Origin: Marsupella aquatica
Lineage: Eukaryota; Plantae; Marchantiophyta
NCBI GenBank assembly: GCA_973895155.1
Contig: OZ316897.1
Location: 14,879,375 to 14,943,374, forward strand
Length of the DNA stretch: 64,000 bases
Reading direction: 5' to 3'
Within the stretch, counting starts at the first letter, position 1, and each line of letters starts with the position of its first letter. The notes under the pieces were generated by a model that had not been told where the DNA came from, did no database searches, and saw only the letters and a list, made by a program, of their open reading frames with translations. The position numbers and the translations under genes are program-made. Below are positions 27,313-44,298 of this stretch, in pieces.

Positions 27313-29034
27313 ATGGCGTGTTGTCAGCGGGGCCCTGGGGCGCTGATCCGCCGGGGGAGAGTGTCGTCCTATTTTTCTTACTGCTTGGCTACTAGGGCTC
27401 CTCCTCGGCAGGATGCAGTAGCAGCTGCTGCCGCTGCCGCAGTTGTCGATTGCCAGTCGAGAACAGGGCTGAATTTGCTGGAGCAGCGATCATGGTGTGG
27501 GACGAAGAAGTCTGTGGTACAGCAGCAGCAGAGAGGAGGGGGTCTCACTGGAAACAGCAAGCACCTGACGGATGTTTCGTGGTCCAGGCGGGCGTCTTTG
27601 AATCCAATCGGGGCAACAGCATTTCTGAAACCAATTTCTAGTGGGCAACAGCAGCAGTTGCAGTTTGCAAGGGGTTATGCATCTGATGGGGACCTTCCTC
27701 CTCATCAGGAGATTGGGATGCCTTCTCTGTCTCCGACTATGACGCAGGGAAATCTCGCAGGGTGGAAAAAGAAGGAGGGTGATCAGGTGATGGCTGGAGA
27801 TGTTCTTTGTGAAATTGAGACTGACAAAGCGACGTTGGAGATGGAGTGTATGGAGGAGGGCTACCTGGCGAAGATTGTTGTGGCAGATGGTGCCAAAGAT
27901 GTCAAAGTCGGTGAGACCATTTGTGTCGTCGTGGAAAATAAGGATGACATTCCGAAGTTTAGCAATTTTGAGCCAAGTGGAGGCGGTGGTGCTCCTCCTC
28001 CAAAGCAGGAAGAGGCTCCCCCAAAAGAGTCTGCACCACCAGAACCTTCTCCTCCATCAGAATCGAAATCTTCACCACCACCACCTCCACCAAAATCGAA
28101 GTCTCCACCGCCTCCATCGTCAGGCGACCGAATTTTCGCTAGCCCAGCTGCAAAGAAACTTGCAGCAGACAAAAATGTGCCTCTCGACAGCATTAGAGGT
28201 ACAGGCCCTGATGGGCATATAGTGAAGGCTGATATTGAGGACTATTTGGCTTCTGGACCTTCTAAGGCGAAACAGGAGGCGCCAAAGGGACAACAAGCGG
28301 AGTCAACTGGAGAAGCAGCACCAGCTCATAGTGAAGGTTTGGATTACTCAAAGATGTCAAGCAATGAGCTACAAAAGGTCACTGCTCGTCGACTCGTTCA
28401 ATCCAAGCAAACCATACCACATTATTATCTGACCCTTGACACTAGGGTTGACAAGATTGTGGAATTGCAAGAGCAGCTCAACCGATCTCAAGAAGCTGCT
28501 AAGCGGGAGAAGCTTACAATAATTGACTTTGTGATCAAGGCAGCAGCTCTGGCCACAAGGAAGGTGCCCGAGGTTAATAGCTCTTGGACAGAGGATGCCA
28601 TTCGCCAGTATAAGAATGTGAATATCAGTGTGGCAATACAGTCAGAACAGATGGTTCCTGTTGTTAAGGATGCGGATCGAAAAGGGCTGGCAGCCATCTC
28701 AGAAGAGGTCAAGGTCTTAATTGAAAAGACGAGTTCCAACAGCCTGGAGCCAGCTGATTACCAGGGTGGAACGTTTGCAATTACATATTTAGGAGAGGAA
28801 CATGGGGTGAAGCAGTTTTCTGCGATCCTCCATCCTCCACAATCGTGTGTTCTTGCTGTTGGAAGAACCGAGAAAAGAGTAATTCCTGGTCTTGAGCCAG
28901 GACAATTTGTCCTCGGTACATTCATTTCGGTCACTATGAGCTGTGATCATAGAGTTGTAGATGGAGCAATCGGGGCACAATGGCTGGGGGCTTTCAAGGA
29001 TTATATCGAGGACCCCATGACTCTACTACTGTAG
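27313..29034 (+). CDS. DLAT: Mitochondrial pyruvate dehydrogenase E2 (dihydrolipoamide acetyltransferase), single lipoyl domain, intronless, divergent catalytic domain
   Basis: 573-aa ORF. Arg/Ser-rich presequence ending ARGYAS; lipoyl domain MPSLSPTMTQGN...EIETDKAT; Pro-rich linker; PSBD ASPAAKKLA...GTGPDGHIVKADI; core SKQTIPHYYL and SCDHRVVDGAIGAQWL. Confidence 0.95.
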   Translation: MACCQRGPGALIRRGRVSSYFSYCLATRAPPRQDAVAAAAAAAVVDCQSRTGLNLLEQRSWCGTKKSVVQQQQRGGGLTGNSKHLTDVSWSRRASLNPIGATAFLKPISSGQQQQLQFARGYASDGDLPPHQEIGMPSLSPTMTQGNLAGWKKKEGDQVMAGDVLCEIETDKATLEMECMEEGYLAKIVVADGAKDVKVGETICVVVENKDDIPKFSNFEPSGGGGAPPPKQEEAPPKESAPPEPSPPSESKSSPPPPPPKSKSPPPPSSGDRIFASPAAKKLAADKNVPLDSIRGTGPDGHIVKADIEDYLASGPSKAKQEAPKGQQAESTGEAAPAHSEGLDYSKMSSNELQKVTARRLVQSKQTIPHYYLTLDTRVDKIVELQEQLNRSQEAAKREKLTIIDFVIKAAALATRKVPEVNSSWTEDAIRQYKNVNISVAIQSEQMVPVVKDADRKGLAAISEEVKVLIEKTSSNSLEPADYQGGTFAITYLGEEHGVKQFSAILHPPQSCVLAVGRTEKRVIPGLEPGQFVLGTFISVTMSCDHRVVDGAIGAQWLGAFKDYIEDPMTLLL

Positions 29035-32007: not shown

Positions 32008-33590
32008 ATGGCGCTCGCTGTCGGTCATACTAGCAAGTTGAACAATGGTACCAGCAGCCCCTTCTCTTCCTCCCATTTCTTTTCGTCCAGACAGCAAACA
32101 AGCAGTGCCAGTTTGTTTAAGGTTTATGGACAAGGGTCTTTTCAGGCTTCTAGGCGGCTCCAAGTCAGGGCAGCTCGCCCGAAGAAAGCTCACAAGAATC
32201 ACGTGGAGCACCACCGCGAAGCCATAGGCGACTCCAAGCCAGTGCTGCCGCCGAAGTTGGAGCTGAAGTGGTTAAACAATGGTGACGAATTGACGGGCTT
32301 GAAGATGGAGCCGCTGGTTCTTGGCGGCCACGGCATAATGTTCGGCTCCCGCATCCCCAAGCACTACTTCATCATAAAGGGCCTTGGAGAAACCGATCAG
32401 GGAGAGGGGTCAGATCCTTGGGAGACAGGCTCCTACGACCTGGCACTAGAGGATGCTGGTGACTGACTTCCCCATCATCATCACCTGCCTTGCTTAGTTG
32501 AGTTGGCTGTTATTTCACAAGAGTTTAGAAGCATATTGTACGAGGAAATTGACTAGAGAAGCTGGCCGGGCCATGTGCATGCTAAATGCAGAATGCTTTG
32601 AGTAGACTTTCTAAACATCTCCTCTCGGGCCGTGGATATTCACAAGTGAGAGTAGTTAAGTCTTCTCATCAAAGTTGTCCACTTCAATCCTACTTTAGTG
32701 AGGGGTTAGGAGATCGAAAGCTTAATCCATGACATGTGATTCTGGATGTAAACAAACTCTCTCTGGCAATGCATGGAGTTGCATTAATTTGACCCGTTTA
32801 AGTAGAAATATGCCATTAAATGTTGATCATCTCATGGTTTGTGCAAATAGTCTCTGAGGCCGTACTCTACTACGTACCTGGAATAACTGTTCGGGAAGTC
32901 GTTTGTGTACGCCACAAGAAGTGAATGATGTCGAAGTTTCTTGCAGGTATTCAGGATCTCAACATCGTGAAATACACTTCTGTGATACCGCCGGAGGCTG
33001 AGCCTGTTTCAGCGTTAGAGGCGAAGCCATTCTTGCGACATGGAGCTGCGATGGAGACAATAATGTCCGTCATGCACGGCGTCAAGGGTGATCGCATCAC
33101 AGCCGGTGTAGGCCGTGTCCAGGTAGATGCCCATCCATCCCTGCAAGAGTCAGAGGCTGAAGGCTGAAATTCTGGATGTTCGGTCGGAGTGCGCAAGCAT
33201 TGCATTAAACGCATAGATTCCTGATTGCTGAAACATTTTAGAGACGGCTTGTACTGTACTTTGCTCGATTGTACTCGATTGTAGTGTAATCACTTTCGTG
33301 AGCATATGATGAGCCCATTCAAATTCATTTGGCAGATCCGCAGAAAAAAGGACAACTTTCACATTGGAGGATACGCGGCAGAGTACGAGGGCCATGCGAG
33401 CGCGGAAGTTGCGAAAAACATTTTGAAGAAAGACTTGACCGGAATTTTCCACAGACGCTTTGATGACAAGGAGTACGAGTGCTTTGAAGAAGATTTCGTC
33501 ATCCAGGAGGGTGAAATTACAAAATCCTTCGGCTCCGTGTTGGCTGCAATCTGCTTTGTCACCTACGTGCTACCGGCATACACTCGCTGA
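32008..33590 (+). CDS. Pyruvoyl-dependent arginine decarboxylase proenzyme (PvlArgDC; AaxB/PdaD family) with N-terminal plastid transit peptide, 293 aa; exons 32008-32458, 32947-33122, 33336-33590
   Basis: GT-AG splicing (phases 1 and 0) gives 882 nt in frame. Motifs GSRIPKHYF..G.GETD.G...PWETGSYDLALEDAGIQDLNIVKYT^SVIP, RHGAAMETIM, ITAGVG, IGGYAAEY and FGSVLAAICF align by eye with Chlamydia AaxB (GTRYP..[35 protein letters not shown]^SVLP..KHGAVLEVIM..IGGWAAEY..FGFCLTALGF). The N-terminus MALA... is Ser/Phe-rich, acid-poor and ends near RLQVRA. Confidence 0.9.
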
Positions 33591-33704
33591 TGCCATTTCT
33601 CCTGAAACCTTTTCTTCGGCCAGTTGGTCTTCGTGGATGTCATCAACCATGGGGTCCAATTCCCAGTCAGGAAGTTCTCCAATAATGTAGCTCGAGCTTC
33701 GGAG

Positions 33705-34414
33705 CCCGATGATGAACCTCGAATTGCTCGTGCAGTATCCGTTTTCAGTGATTTAATTGATTGATTGAGAATAGAACCAGACGATGGAATTCATTGGGGA
33801 GTCATTGGATCCGGAGACGAGGATCTCTCGAGCAAATTGATGTGCCAAACAAGCTCTGGAAAAGGTTTTTGCTTGCCCGATGATGAACCTCGAATTGCTC
33901 GTCCAGTATCCGCTTTCATGATTCAGTGATTCAATTGATTGATTGAGAATAGAACCAGACGATGGAATTCATTGGGGAGTCATTGGATCCGGACACGAGG
34001 ATCTCTCGAGCAAATTGATGTGCCAAACAAGCTCTGGAAAAGGTTTTTGCTTGCCCGATGATGAACCTCGAATTGCTCGTCCAGTACCCGCTTTCATGAT
34101 TCAGTGATTCAATTGATTGATTGAGAATAGAACCAGACGATGGAATTCATTGGGGAGTCATTGGGTCCAGAGACGAGGATCTCTCGAGCAAATTGATGTG
34201 CCAAACAAGCTCTGGAAAAGGTTTTTGCTTGCCCGATGATGAACCTCGAATTGCTCGTCCAGTACCCGCTTTCATGATTCAGTGATTCAATTGATTGATT
34301 GAGAATAGAACCAGACGATGGAATTCATTGGGGAGTCATTGGATATGGAGACGAGGATCTCTCGAGCAAAGCAAATTGATGTGCCAAACAAGCTCTGGAA
34401 AAGGTTTTTTGCTT
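33705..34414. repeat. Tandem array, 4 x ~178-bp near-identical units
   Basis: Units start CCCGATGATGAACCTCGAATTGCTCG at 33705, 33876, 34054 and 34232 (periods 171, 178, 178). Confidence 0.95.
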
Positions 34415-36807
34415 GGAACATCATGACGTGATGCTTCCACACCAGTTGATTCAGATGTGGGATTCACAAATAAATGACTACCTGCTGAGCAAATGATCTC
34501 TTACCAGTGGAATTCCTTATATATGGACAACGAAAGTGTGTATAATTAACTAAACCTTGCAAGACCAAAAATTGGTGAGTGAGTAATTCGATGTAGGAAA
34601 TTGAAATGAACCCTTTCTCCAGAAATCTATTATTGTGGTTAGAGTCTGAAAATGTGGTGTAGCATAACCCATGGCCCTGAATCACTACTAAGGGCGTAGG
34701 GTAGAAGGTATTTAATGGGCTGGAGGGGGTTATTGGGTGTAATCCCTGCGTGAGGGGAACCCCTGGACACCCCTTAGGGTACATCCCTGCCTGAGAGAGT
34801 TACAATTCATTACCCCCTATCAGCCCATGGGTTACCAAGCATAAATTATACTTGGGAGGAGTTGCAACCTTGATTAATGCCATTGACACACAGATCTAAA
34901 TCAGGGAACCTAGGGCCCAGGCTGGCAATTAGATTATGGCCCATAACTTTCAATGAAAATATGAAGCAAAACTCACAATGAGGGCTGCCCATGGCCCTGA
35001 GTGGTTATGGGCTGTAATCCTCCAGGACTTTAAAACCTGAAGTTCCCAACGAGACCATGGATTATGTGCGTCGGACCCTGAGTGTAATTTTGCCCTATTT
35101 CAGATGTGGTGTAGCATAATCCATTGCCCTGAGAAAATATGGCTCTGTTCCCCAGGGGTTTACTACCCATAGCCCTCAAAAGACCATGAATAAAAAAACT
35201 AGAAGAAATACATAAGGAGGGGTTTAGTTGGGATACGTGCTGCAAGAACTCATTTCCTCTTCCCAGCTTGGTAGGTATTATACATTAAAGTCCTGTTTAG
35301 AGTTCATTACGTGATATAGGCCACCCCCCCCCACACACACAGACACACACGAGCTTCATGTTTGGAGGTCATTATGGGATATATATAACGCCCCCCAAAA
35401 CAAGACCTTCAGCTCCAGTATTGAGGGAATATGATTGTCAGTAATGCTCGAAACAAGACCATGCTACATTGAAAGGCTTGAGAGATTTTTATTTCTTTGA
35501 ATGTTAGTAAGTAAACATAGAGTAGAATCTTCCTAAAGAGGTGATCAAGATCTTGACAAGACAATATGCTCCTGGATTTCCCAGAAAATTGCTAAGGGAA
35601 AATCACAAAGGGCATTAAGTACATCATAGGTCCATGTTCCCAGCGCATTGTGGGTTATAACATCCTCCAAAAATTAGGGCTTTAACTCAAGTTTTGAGAG
35701 ACTATTATTGCTTGTCATGGCCCTATACCAAGTAGTTAACACACTTAATCCCTGTTAATACTTTTTCTGGTTCTTTTTCTCCTGTCTTCCCACTTGAAGT
35801 CAATTATCCAGTACGTCAATACCAATTTAATTCTTCCTCTTTTAATATAAACATATTCTCCTGTTGTTTCAGGTGCAATAGAGCTACTTTACTCATGAGT
35901 CTTGTTGTATGATGACCCTTGTACCATGTGTGAACCTGGCTACTGAATGGAGTCAATTGGCAAGCCCATTTGTCAACAGATTCACTCAACTTTGCCTTTT
36001 GAGGTTAATGAGGGTGTATAATATTTTGGACCCACTCCTATAGTTCAGCATTGAAACATGCTACCACCTGGCCGACTATTCCTTTTCATAGCGGTGAACT
36101 CGGACAAGTTGATAATGAGCAAAGTGGAGAATCATTTTAGTCCTAAGTGGTGCCCGGAAATTTCATCACAAAGATCATCAGGTCATTCTGATGTTTGTTG
36201 ATGTAGAAGAGAAGAAGTGTAAATTTCTACATTTGTTTGATGTCTTTCTTCAGCCAAAAAGATTTGATATGCATTCCCCATCAATAGGTATACGGCTGAG
36301 TTTCACAATGTTGTGTTTGCAGTTAGCTCAGACATATGGTAATCCGGGGGTAAATCCAAAGTGAGCTGCAGACCAAGTTGCTCAACATTCACAAACCTAG
36401 TTCACCTTTCTGTCACAGTCCATACCAACTCATTTGCATCCCAGTGATTTAAACTCTCTAACCAGGACATTCTTGTAAAAGGAACCCAACAAAAGGAGGG
36501 GATTCCTTGACATTAATCTAAATGAAAATATAGGAAAGTTGATAATGTTAAAATGCGGAAAAATACCTCTAATGTGAAAGCTATGTTGCCTCCTATCACC
36601 AATGCAATGGGTGACTTAGGCTACATGATAGAGGTTGTGAGGAAGAGTGGATGTTGAAGACAGAGAATGTGTTTGGGCTCGAGCAGAATTTCTTTTGGTC
36701 CTTCATCCAGCAAATTGCCCTACTTAATTAGCTTCTTGCTTGGCTTTATAAATAAATAGGTCTTCACGACGTAACTTGTATGGTATCTGAGCCTCTTCAA
36801 AGAACTT

Positions 36808-41522: not shown

Positions 41523-43532
41523 TTAGCTTTCTTCAAAGGGCCCAAATTCAAACGGTACCTTCGTGCTGCCTGCTTCCACTGCATTCCTCCACCGTCTATA
41601 TCGAACTCCCAACTTGTCATATGACACGGGAGTTTCCCAAACATTAGCTCCCCGCTTCATCCTATCCATCTGACCTTCCACAAGTCTAAGGTCTTCACCC
41701 AATACCTGGTTGGCAAGATAGAGCCACACCTTTGTAATGAACGGGACGTACTTCGCCCACTGAGCAAAATCTAGGGCCATACGGTACAGCAGTCTAGTCT
41801 TTCCTCGTGTTGACGGCATGCACACATGTAGCTGATGAAGGTGGTTTTTACAAGCTTGTGTGCTTGCGCCATCTAGTTGACCAGGCTTGACCAAACCTAT
41901 AGTAGAAAGCACCATGCATGGTGGCTGAAACTGCATGTCAATAGGGTAAGGATCCCAATAACCACTCAAGGCAGCTGCTGGAGTTCTGAATCGAACAAAA
42001 TTTGGGACCGGCCAGCCCTTTGCAAATGTCGATGTATGAGTGAACGGAGCGTGTGCCAGATCGAGAAGATTCTCCATCAGAAGCCCATGCTCCACTGGCA
42101 GCTCCAAGACGATCTCTGCGTGAATTGTGAAATTTGAAGGTGGATTCAATGACGGTAGCACAGTAGCTGGGATTTCATCCCCCGGCCAGATCCACACCAT
42201 CCCATCCTGTTCGATACACGGCAAGGACCTTATTTCAGCTTTCACAGATCTCGTTGACGGCATCTTTTGGCATTCCCCGCCTGTAGTGTACTCCCATCCA
42301 TGATAGGGGCATTGAACTCGCCCATCAACCACTTTCCCAAGCGACAGAGGACATGCTCTGTGAGCACATTCATCCCGAACACACCCAGCTCGCCCATCCT
42401 TCCCACGAAAAAGAACCCACGGCTCCTCAAAACTCTCAAACGGAATCAATGTGTCAACACTGATGTCACTCGAGAATGCAACAGGGTACCAGAAGTTCTT
42501 TAGCTTATTTGGATAAGGGGCAACAGGACCTGCAACACTAAGCTTTTTCTGAATAGACGATCTATCAGTCAGTAAAGTGGTCGAGTCGGAAATGACCCCG
42601 TTGCTGCTTGCGTCTGCCGTTGGTATCGAAGTTGAGACAGTTTTGAGTTGGGTGGGGGTGGTCACCTTCGTGCCGTCAGTGGAAACGCTGTACAGCAGCT
42701 TATCGTTGATGACAGATTCAATTTCGGCCAATTTCTTCAACGAATGCTCGACCCTAGCCTCAGACAGATGCACCTGAGTGTGAGCTCGGGCCAATTCTTC
42801 CTGCAATTGTGCCAACTGCTCTCTCCTCGCAGCAACAGAGTTCTGCTCCCGAGCCAGAGGATTCAAAACCTCCACGACTTTGTCATGGGCTGACTTAATT
42901 GCCAAAACATCCTGCCTGGCTCTCCAGTCTAGGTACAGCACATCTTGCCATAAAACCTCCAAGGCCTGATTCAAATCCACTGCTCCTTCACGCGGGTTAT
43001 TGTTCCCTTGAGCCCTAGGATCCGGGACCTCGAAAATGCTATTTGTATCCGAGAGATTCTGCCCACCATGACTACTGCTGGACACACCAATGCATCGGGA
43101 GCCTCGTCTACTACTACTAGAATAATATCCCCCCCCACTTTCATGCCTAATCTTCCTTCCATACGGAGATTTCCCAGAGCTCCCTGGCCCTTCACTACTA
43201 CTCAAATTCCAAGAGGAGGACAATGAGATGTTGCTACTGCTTGCAAAACCACCACCATCTTGCCTCCCAGAAAGCGATTGTTTCCTACCTGCCTGTGAAG
43301 AGGAGGATGCAGATGCCAGACGGTCAACCCCATCCACTGCAACTCGAAGACATTTCAGAGATACCAAGGAAGAAGCGTACCTCGTAGAACACTCATTTCT
43401 TTGGTGGGAGGCTGAGCAACTCAACCCCGCAAAGGATTCAGCAGTAGCAGGAAAGGTGCTGCCGTCGAGAACATGATGATGACACAACGACGGGCCGCAC
43501 ACCAGCTTCGCCGCAGCACTTGCTACCGCCAT
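41523..43532 (-). CDS. CAO: Chlorophyllide a oxygenase (chlorophyll b synthase), intronless, 669 aa
   Basis: ATG at 43532 (MAVASAAA). A-domain LDWRARQDVLAIKSAHDKVVEVLNPLARE; coiled B region; C-domain LKNFWYPVAF; Rieske CAHRACPL...CPYHGWEY; mononuclear-iron ENLLDLAHAPFTH; C-terminal YDKLGVRYRRWR. Confidence 0.97.
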   Translation of the reverse strand: MAVASAAAKLVCGPSLCHHHVLDGSTFPATAESFAGLSCSASHQRNECSTRYASSLVSLKCLRVAVDGVDRLASASSSSQAGRKQSLSGRQDGGGFASSSNISLSSSWNLSSSEGPGSSGKSPYGRKIRHESGGGYYSSSSRRGSRCIGVSSSSHGGQNLSDTNSIFEVPDPRAQGNNNPREGAVDLNQALEVLWQDVLYLDWRARQDVLAIKSAHDKVVEVLNPLAREQNSVAARREQLAQLQEELARAHTQVHLSEARVEHSLKKLAEIESVINDKLLYSVSTDGTKVTTPTQLKTVSTSIPTADASSNGVISDSTTLLTDRSSIQKKLSVAGPVAPYPNKLKNFWYPVAFSSDISVDTLIPFESFEEPWVLFRGKDGRAGCVRDECAHRACPLSLGKVVDGRVQCPYHGWEYTTGGECQKMPSTRSVKAEIRSLPCIEQDGMVWIWPGDEIPATVLPSLNPPSNFTIHAEIVLELPVEHGLLMENLLDLAHAPFTHTSTFAKGWPVPNFVRFRTPAAALSGYWDPYPIDMQFQPPCMVLSTIGLVKPGQLDGASTQACKNHLHQLHVCMPSTRGKTRLLYRMALDFAQWAKYVPFITKVWLYLANQVLGEDLRLVEGQMDRMKRGANVWETPVSYDKLGVRYRRWRNAVEAGSTKVPFEFGPFEES

Positions 43533-44298
43533 TAACAAGCCGATTCTCAGACAACCTCAGCTAGGTTTTCTACTCCACCAATTCTCCCTCGCTAGAATCG
43601 TTGCAGCAGCAGCTGCAGTTCTGATGCCGCCAGCCACTATCGCCTCCTGCCATCACTCGTCCTCTGCATGCGCTGGTCGAGCTCCTCCAGCATCCTATGC
43701 CCCTCCACCATATTTCCTCTCTCTCTCTCCCTCCCTCCTCCCAATGTACGCAACGCAGTGGAGCTCCTCTCCCTCCTCAGCGAATTCACTCACCCTCTCG
43801 AATCCCTACACGTCCATGGCCCGATCACTCCACAATGATCCGAAAAGGCGAAAAAGGAAGGACGCCAACAACATCAACAACTACAGAGTGGTGGCAGCAC
43901 AAGACGTGTCTGCAAAGCGGGATGTGGAGAAAGAACTATTCGTTTCGGGCGAGGTGGGTCTGCCCAATTGCGAGAGGCTGCTGCAGCTCAAGCGATCGGA
44001 GGCCATGGAGGCTCGCTATCAATGGTGAAGGAGTTGGGTGAAGCAGGAGTGGAGCACGACTGGTGGACCAAGGGAAGGATGGATGGCAAACCTCGTGGCT
44101 CTGGAGGACTGGAGAGGAGAGACAGAGGGGGCGAGGAGAGGAGAGGAGAGGAGAGGAGAGGAAGAATGAATCATCAGCGAAATCGAGAAACAGGAACGGG
44201 TAACAAAATCCACTGCGCCAATCCCATTAGAGAACATTCTTTCAGGATCCTCAACTCCACCCAATGGATTTGAGTCTGCAATTAAGAGATCGCTATGG

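Follow-up and report, generated by a model that had tools for sequence, protein, structure and literature searches.

Marsupella aquatica, a liverwort, carries on contig OZ316897.1 a three-exon gene for a protein of the pyruvoyl-dependent arginine decarboxylase family (PvlArgDC, PF01862). Positions below refer to the window, the whole 64,000-nucleotide stretch of this contig that was analysed. The reading frame opens with an ATG at 32008 on the plus strand, leaves exon 1 through a GT donor at 32459, resumes after an AG acceptor at 32945–32946 and closes with a TGA at 33588–33590; its exons total 882 nt, or 293 codons plus the stop. The features of the gene are as follows.

32008..32458, plus strand: exon 1, residues 1–150 and the first base of the Gly151 codon, ending in phase 1; leader, linker and start of the PvlArgDC domain
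32008..32172, plus strand: predicted chloroplast transit peptide, residues 1–55, ending at a V-R-A↓A motif (precise end uncertain)
32173..32352, plus strand: linker before the Pfam domain, residues 56–115
32437..32439, plus strand: Asp144 codon, equivalent to Asp35 of Methanocaldococcus jannaschii (M. jannaschii) by profile alignment to PDB 1n2m
32459..32946, plus strand: intron 1, 488 nt, GT..AG, phase 1, with 42% GC against 54% in the flanking exons
32947..33122, plus strand: exon 2, residues 151–209, carrying the self-processing site
32961..32963, plus strand: Asn156 codon, aligned with M. jannaschii Asn47
32976..32981, plus strand: Thr161-Ser162 codons, predicted serinolysis site, aligned with M. 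jannaschii S52-S53; Ser162 is predicted to become the pyruvoyl group
33123..33335, plus strand: intron 2, 213 nt, GT..AG, phase 0
33336..33590, plus strand: exon 3, residues 210–293 and the TGA stop
33381..33383, plus strand: Glu225 codon, aligned with M. jannaschii Glu109

The locus was searched exon by exon, with the 301-residue Calypogeia fissa protein P0002 as a full-length stand-in for fold, profile and tree. Searches by tblastn with two orthologues matched the same three pieces, as one copy in the window (32008–32460 with P0002; 33333–33584 for exon 3). The exon translations tile onto full-length plant orthologues without gap or overlap, the best named match being P0002 (exon 1 is 73%, exon 2 93% and exon 3 92% identical to it), and the ATG of exon 1 lines up with Met1 of orthologues P0002, P0006 and P0010. 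GC content is 48–55% in the exons and 42–45% in the introns.

All three exons match PF01862, and they do so in order. Residues 116–150 of exon 1 cover positions 1–28 of the hidden Markov model (16.7 bits), exon 2 covers positions 30–86 (46.7 bits, E = 4e-12, by itself above the gathering score of 22.7) and exon 3 covers positions 93–161 (17.1 bits); P0002 scores 101.9 bits across positions 1–161. In the Pfam scan this was the only significant match on the exons and the sole match on the orthologues, with domains that bind pyridoxal phosphate (PLP), such as the decarboxylase domain PF02784, giving no significant match on either; exon 2 also gave a chance-level match to the PE family (E = 0.072, under its cut-off). 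A profile of the plant proteins, searched against solved structures, matched PvlArgDC from M. jannaschii and nothing else. The alignment places Asn156, Thr161-Ser162 and Glu225 on Asn47, Ser52-Ser53 and Glu109 of that enzyme, residues for which PDB mutants exist at Asn47 (2qqd, N47A), Ser53 (1n2m, S53A) and Glu109 (2qqc, E109Q), and the catalytic Asn, Ser and Glu are invariant in 70 of 70 diverse family members. Asp144 falls on Asp35, which is reported to have a substrate-binding role in the M. jannaschii enzyme. The original prediction, made from the letters of the window, had described a clean three-exon gene with PvlArgDC motifs (the Thr-Ser site and the Glu of IGGYAAEY), distinct from the PLP-dependent arginine decarboxylase (ADC) of plants; the GT..AG introns, colinear family matches and gap-free tiling agree with it, the motifs are present in the translation (NIVKYT↓SVIP in exon 2, GGYAAEY in exon 3) on the catalytic residues of the M. 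jannaschii enzyme, and the Pfam result separates the protein from the PLP enzymes.

The AlphaFold model of P0002 has pLDDT above 90 over residues 121–300, and its only significant PDB matches are chains of M. jannaschii PvlArgDC (E = 3e-13, target-normalised TM score 0.84, 169 columns), the one solved enzyme, to which sequence identity is about 24%. As modelled on this orthologue, the fold is that of PvlArgDC.

Some 115 residues precede the Pfam domain, which begins at residue 116; the nearest bacterial proteins (186–194 residues) start about 10 residues ahead of it. Ser and Thr make up 35% of residues 1–40 of the leader, Arg does not occur in residues 1–27, and Asp and Glu are missing from residues 1–66, whose net charge is +10; the V-R-A↓A motif lies at residues 53–56. 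In the orthologue alignment conservation is low in the leader compared with the mature part, and residues 1–64 of the P0002 model are disordered (pLDDT below 50). The linker of residues 56–115 is conserved among land-plant orthologues, absent from the 186–194-residue bacterial relatives, and modelled in P0002 as a short helix and strands (pLDDT 55–79). An extension of roughly 100 residues with a transit-peptide-like start had been predicted, and such a Ser/Thr-rich, acid-free leader is what we find, at slightly greater length.

Judged by sequence, this composition is the classical chloroplast transit peptide pattern and not that of an Arg-rich amphipathic mitochondrial presequence. From composition we regard a plastid location for the M. 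aquatica protein as reasonably probable. The Chlorokybus and Spirogloea orthologues have transit-peptide-like leaders too. The same enzyme might instead be sent to mitochondria or to both organelles, or be kept in the cytosol, given that composition cannot surely separate chloroplast, mitochondrial and dual leaders and that the N-termini of algal orthologues are quite different; the Arg-free, Ser/Thr-rich start, a first acidic residue not before position 67 and the V-R-A↓A motif speak against these destinations, which we consider rather unlikely. Trebouxiophyte proteins P0197, P0200, P0201, P0203 and P0204 have Lys-rich N-terminal segments resembling nuclear-localisation signals, and the enzyme may occupy another compartment in these algae.

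The neighbourhoods of prokaryotic and viral relatives bear on what the enzyme makes. In a gammaproteobacterial metagenome-assembled genome (MAG; locus L021, 348–4822) the gene right after a PvlArgDC homologue encodes an APC-family amino-acid permease, with a deoxyhypusine synthase (DHS) homologue nearby, and on a 103.5-kb IMG/VR contig (L081, 2911–6488) another PvlArgDC homologue lies near a DHS homologue. We read the two loci as possible agmatine-based polyamine or exchange modules, the second being on a putative viral contig, and the permease and DHS neighbours support agmatine production in the subfamily; DHS homologues have been tied to agmatine-dependent homospermidine synthesis, with a pyruvoyl ADC noted in one such cluster (PMC13625781). 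An Omnitrophota MAG (L003, 479–2190) calls for caution on the substrate, since a pyruvoyl histidine decarboxylase (PF02329) stands there directly upstream of the PvlArgDC homologue on the same strand. Moreover, P0002 and the closest bacterial relatives alike score under the cut-offs of TIGR00286 and NF009064, the NCBIfam equivalog models derived from archaeal PdaD. They therefore form a separate subfamily of the PvlArgDC family, for which the substrate specificity of PdaD should not be assumed, and arginine is the substrate that we infer.

The green proteins could, then, be true pyruvoyl enzymes of PvlArgDC fold that act on a substrate other than arginine or outside polyamine metabolism. The missed cut-offs, the distance from the one solved enzyme, the histidine decarboxylase beside a close relative and a conserved 60-residue, land-plant-specific linker ahead of the domain would suit such a role, as would the PLP-dependent ADC that land plants already have. 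Against it, the three catalytic residues defined by mutation are all retained, as is the Asp that aligns with Asp35, the permease and DHS homologues beside close relatives fit agmatine, and we know of no PF01862 member that acts on a substrate other than arginine; on this balance we think it unlikely. Among the prokaryotic relatives, PvlArgDC homologues from Methanothrix MAGs (L004 and L005; P0031, P0033, P0028 and P0030) have a hydrophobic, signal-peptide-like N-terminus, odd for an enzyme held to make cytoplasmic agmatine, and bacterial proteins P0047, P0056 and P0059 have lipoprotein-like leaders.

Orthologues occur in liverworts (Calypogeia, Marchantia and Riccia), a moss (Sphagnum), a lycophyte (Selaginella), ferns (Adiantum and Pteridium), streptophyte algae (Chlorokybus and Spirogloea) and trebouxiophyte green algae (Myrmecia, Coccomyxa and Botryococcus). 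The best 120 hits contain no seed plant, Physcomitrium or hornwort name, though many such proteomes are among the sources, and this ranked list suggests that the gene was probably lost in seed plants. The presence of the gene in both chlorophyte and streptophyte algae makes its acquisition look as old as the green lineage, and not a transfer into early land plants. A restriction to non-seed plants, as originally proposed, thus agrees with the lack of seed-plant names among those hits and is too narrow for the algae.

A profile search of 1.84 billion representatives yielded 778 relatives, and a scan of 185,579 prokaryotic genomes yielded 166 loci, the best of which (42–54% identity) belong to uncultured bacteria, Desulfarculaceae, Omnitrophota, Methanothrix, Actinomycetes, Clostridia, Acidobacteriota and a gammaproteobacterial MAG. 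Two careful IQ-TREE runs (LG+C20+F+G4) agree in placing 13 green sequences with species names and 14 further sequences in one clade (support 100/99) that is nested within a varied set of bacteria, archaea and viral contigs. Within the green clade embryophytes (99/92) and bryophytes (99/94) group broadly as vertical descent would lead one to expect; no single bacterial lineage stands out as its sister (82/86). These topologies fit a single ancient acquisition by a eukaryote from a prokaryote, followed by vertical descent.

Two other routes of entry were weighed against the same trees. A giant virus of algae might have delivered the gene to the green lineage, for Nucleocytoviricota make up most of one Atlas cluster of PF01862 proteins and 10 IMG/VR contigs encode homologues, 2 of them at 50% identity to the plant protein. 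The viral copies are, however, scattered across several prokaryotic clades; none falls within the green clade or is its immediate sister, and L081 and L082 group with prokaryote-like proteins; we rejected this origin as very unlikely. The original prediction, read as a horizontal acquisition by early non-seed land plants with Chlamydiae as a possible source, drew on the Thr-Ser cleavage site reported for chlamydial AaxB, and the family is indeed overwhelmingly prokaryotic. It is nonetheless highly improbable, with chlorophyte and streptophyte algae in the same 100/99 clade, no Chlamydia-named protein in the best 120 relatives, and no chlamydial or cyanobacterial genome in the best 80 of the 166 prokaryotic loci. 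The dipeptide carries no chlamydial signal, because YTS is the commonest cleavage form among prokaryotic relatives, and YSS occurs in Selaginella and Adiantum; Thr-Ser was accordingly discarded as a chlamydial mark. A clade with Elusimicrobia and Lichenicola proteins sits in the other half of the tree from the green clade, and chlamydial AaxB may belong there; the tree contained no sequence verified by name as chlamydial, and a search with P0159 for named chlamydial AaxB returned Elusimicrobia and Lichenicola names only. The phylogeny thus keeps the prokaryotic acquisition and, with this putatively AaxB-like clade so distant, parts with the chlamydial source. Chlamydiaceae, moreover, are reported to have gained aaxABC by horizontal gene transfer after their split from Parachlamydiaceae (PMC2720952), and so are unlikely to have supplied a gene common to all green lineages.

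Gene calls from other genomic contigs are broken at the same points as the M. aquatica gene, so both intron positions are common to relatives. In 17 distinct exon-1-only calls homology stops exactly after ...LALE[DHA]AG, the intron 1 position; exon-2-only calls P0106, P0112 and P0114 begin GIQDLN and end ...GVGR[VI]Q; and P0131 and P0092 begin at IRRK, after the intron 2 position. An algal fragment, P0132, reads through the first intron position, and the introns may therefore be younger than the gene. Four orthologues (P0006, P0010, P0014 and P0017) are full-length uninterrupted coding sequences on contigs of 1.2–1.4 kb, which are too short for the two introns and therefore represent spliced mRNA of relatives. 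Two Selaginella gene models, P0022 and P0023, differ only just before IRRK, at the M. aquatica intron 2 position, which suggests a mis-called splice donor in one of them and an intron at the same position in this lycophyte.

A domain scan of six larger open reading frames (ORFs) of the window identified the neighbours. Upstream, an uninterrupted 573-residue ORF (27313–29034, plus strand) with lipoyl, E3-binding and 2-oxoacid dehydrogenase acyltransferase domains, of the pyruvate dehydrogenase (PDH) E2 type (dihydrolipoamide acyltransferase), ends 3 kb before the PvlArgDC gene. Downstream, a long ORF (41523–43538, minus strand) with Rieske 2Fe-2S and PaO (pheophorbide a oxygenase) domains is a chloroplast oxygenase of plant/cyanobacterial type. 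Bacterial contamination or a dead relic, for which only the prokaryotic type of the protein speaks, is barely credible and was rejected: the gene has two spliceosomal-type GT..AG introns at positions common to relatives, lies between plant-type genes, and keeps an open frame whose mature part is 92–93% identical to that of Calypogeia while the leader has diverged. The original argument against contamination, from introns and plant neighbours, is strengthened by the shared intron positions and by the PDH E2 and Rieske/PaO genes on either side. A 178-bp unit in 4.0 tandem copies (95% matches; window 33704–34415) begins about 115 bp past the stop codon and may lie within or just past the 3′ untranslated region.

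We consider it likely that this is an intact, single-copy nuclear liverwort gene for a 293-residue proenzyme of the PvlArgDC family, which the green lineage acquired, passed on vertically and lost in seed plants. In the mechanism we propose, about 55 N-terminal residues would act as an import signal, most likely for the plastid, before being removed. The folded proenzyme would cut itself between Thr161 and Ser162, so that Ser162 ends up as the pyruvoyl group at the N-terminus of the alpha chain. By analogy, three alpha–beta pairs would form a trimer, and this enzyme would turn L-arginine into agmatine without PLP, Glu225 serving as the catalytic acid, and plant agmatine iminohydrolase and N-carbamoylputrescine amidohydrolase would carry agmatine on to putrescine. 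The gene itself would descend vertically from one ancient prokaryotic acquisition, having gained introns and a leader, with apparent loss in seed plants. A more ambitious form of this proposal, in which the gene was acquired before the chlorophyte/streptophyte split, kept for about a billion years as a second, organelle-targeted source of agmatine that needs no PLP, and then lost in seed plants, is put forward tentatively, as a possibility that falls a little short of an even chance.

Several observations weigh against the likely reading of an acquired, vertically inherited green arginine decarboxylase. P0002 scores well under both archaeal equivalog cut-offs (53.6 versus 106.95 for TIGR00286; 44.9 versus 207 for NF009064), and arginine decarboxylase activity across the green clade is something we infer from sequence. 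Trebouxiophyte orthologues open with Lys-rich segments that are not transit-peptide-like, which speaks against one and the same localisation throughout the clade. Transcript support comes from relatives of M. aquatica, in which spliced transcripts are present. The absence from seed plants is one of names in the best 120 hits, and a grapevine gene, VIT_09s0002g02030, is tabled in one paper as ‘Pyruvoyl-dependent arginine decarboxylase’.

Full-text searches found no paper describing PvlArgDC in plants or green algae, so the predicted lack of any characterisation in land plants stands as far as the literature searched. Proteins from Marchantia (P0190), Riccia, Myrmecia and Coccomyxa already bear the homology-based automatic name ‘arginine decarboxylase’; the novelty lies in the corrected evolutionary picture and in there being no experimental study that we could find, the existence of the gene having been labelled in databases. 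A duckweed ‘prokaryotic ADC’ was considered as a member of the same family and rejected, being a PLP-dependent Orn/Lys/Arg decarboxylase. Textbook plant polyamine synthesis has one type of arginine decarboxylase, the PLP enzyme, and green algae are described in published accounts as lacking an arginine route. Should the pyruvoyl enzyme be active in plastids of bryophytes, lycophytes, ferns and green algae, it would provide a second entry to agmatine and putrescine, could explain the agmatine source of some green algae and would give bryophytes, lycophytes and ferns a parallel route. It would also be a clean case of an ancient prokaryotic gene that the green lineage kept and seed plants lost. 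Marchantia, which combines an orthologue with good genetics, makes direct testing feasible.

Among known systems, one close counterpart is M. jannaschii PdaD (PDB codes 1mt1, 1n2m, 2qqc and 2qqd), with which the liverwort protein shares the Pfam family, the fold as modelled on P0002 and equivalents of Asn47, Ser53 and Glu109; self-processing into beta and alpha chains is predicted for it. It differs in having Thr-Ser where PdaD has Ser-Ser, in its roughly 24% identity, in its 115-residue N-terminal extension and spliced nuclear gene, and in missing the equivalog cut-offs. Chlamydial AaxB, of the arginine:agmatine exchange system aaxABC, likewise belongs to PF01862 and has Thr-Ser at its cleavage site, yet no phylogenetic affinity with the liverwort gene was found in a tree without any sequence verified by name as chlamydial. 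The porin (aaxA) and antiporter (aaxC) of that operon were neither expected nor seen among the six larger ORFs scanned, and whereas AaxB serves acid resistance or arginine depletion, the liverwort protein presumably has a biosynthetic role in an organelle.

The nearest relatives are a bacterial and archaeal subfamily of 186–240 residues (Ignavibacteriae, Desulfarculaceae, Gammaproteobacteria MAGs, Omnitrophota, Methanothrix and Sorangium), with 45–58% identity over the domain, DPWETGSY and GGxAAEY motifs and mostly Thr-Ser; unlike the plant protein they are without leader, linker and introns, and some have signal peptides or permease and DHS neighbours. Marchantia polymorpha P0190 and the other green orthologues belong to the same 100/99 clade, the land-plant members sharing the linker, and P0190 differs as a species-level orthologue only. 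The PLP-dependent ADC of plants, with its alanine-racemase fold, presumably catalyses the same conversion of arginine to agmatine, with an unrelated fold and cofactor, from another origin, and in seed plants as well.

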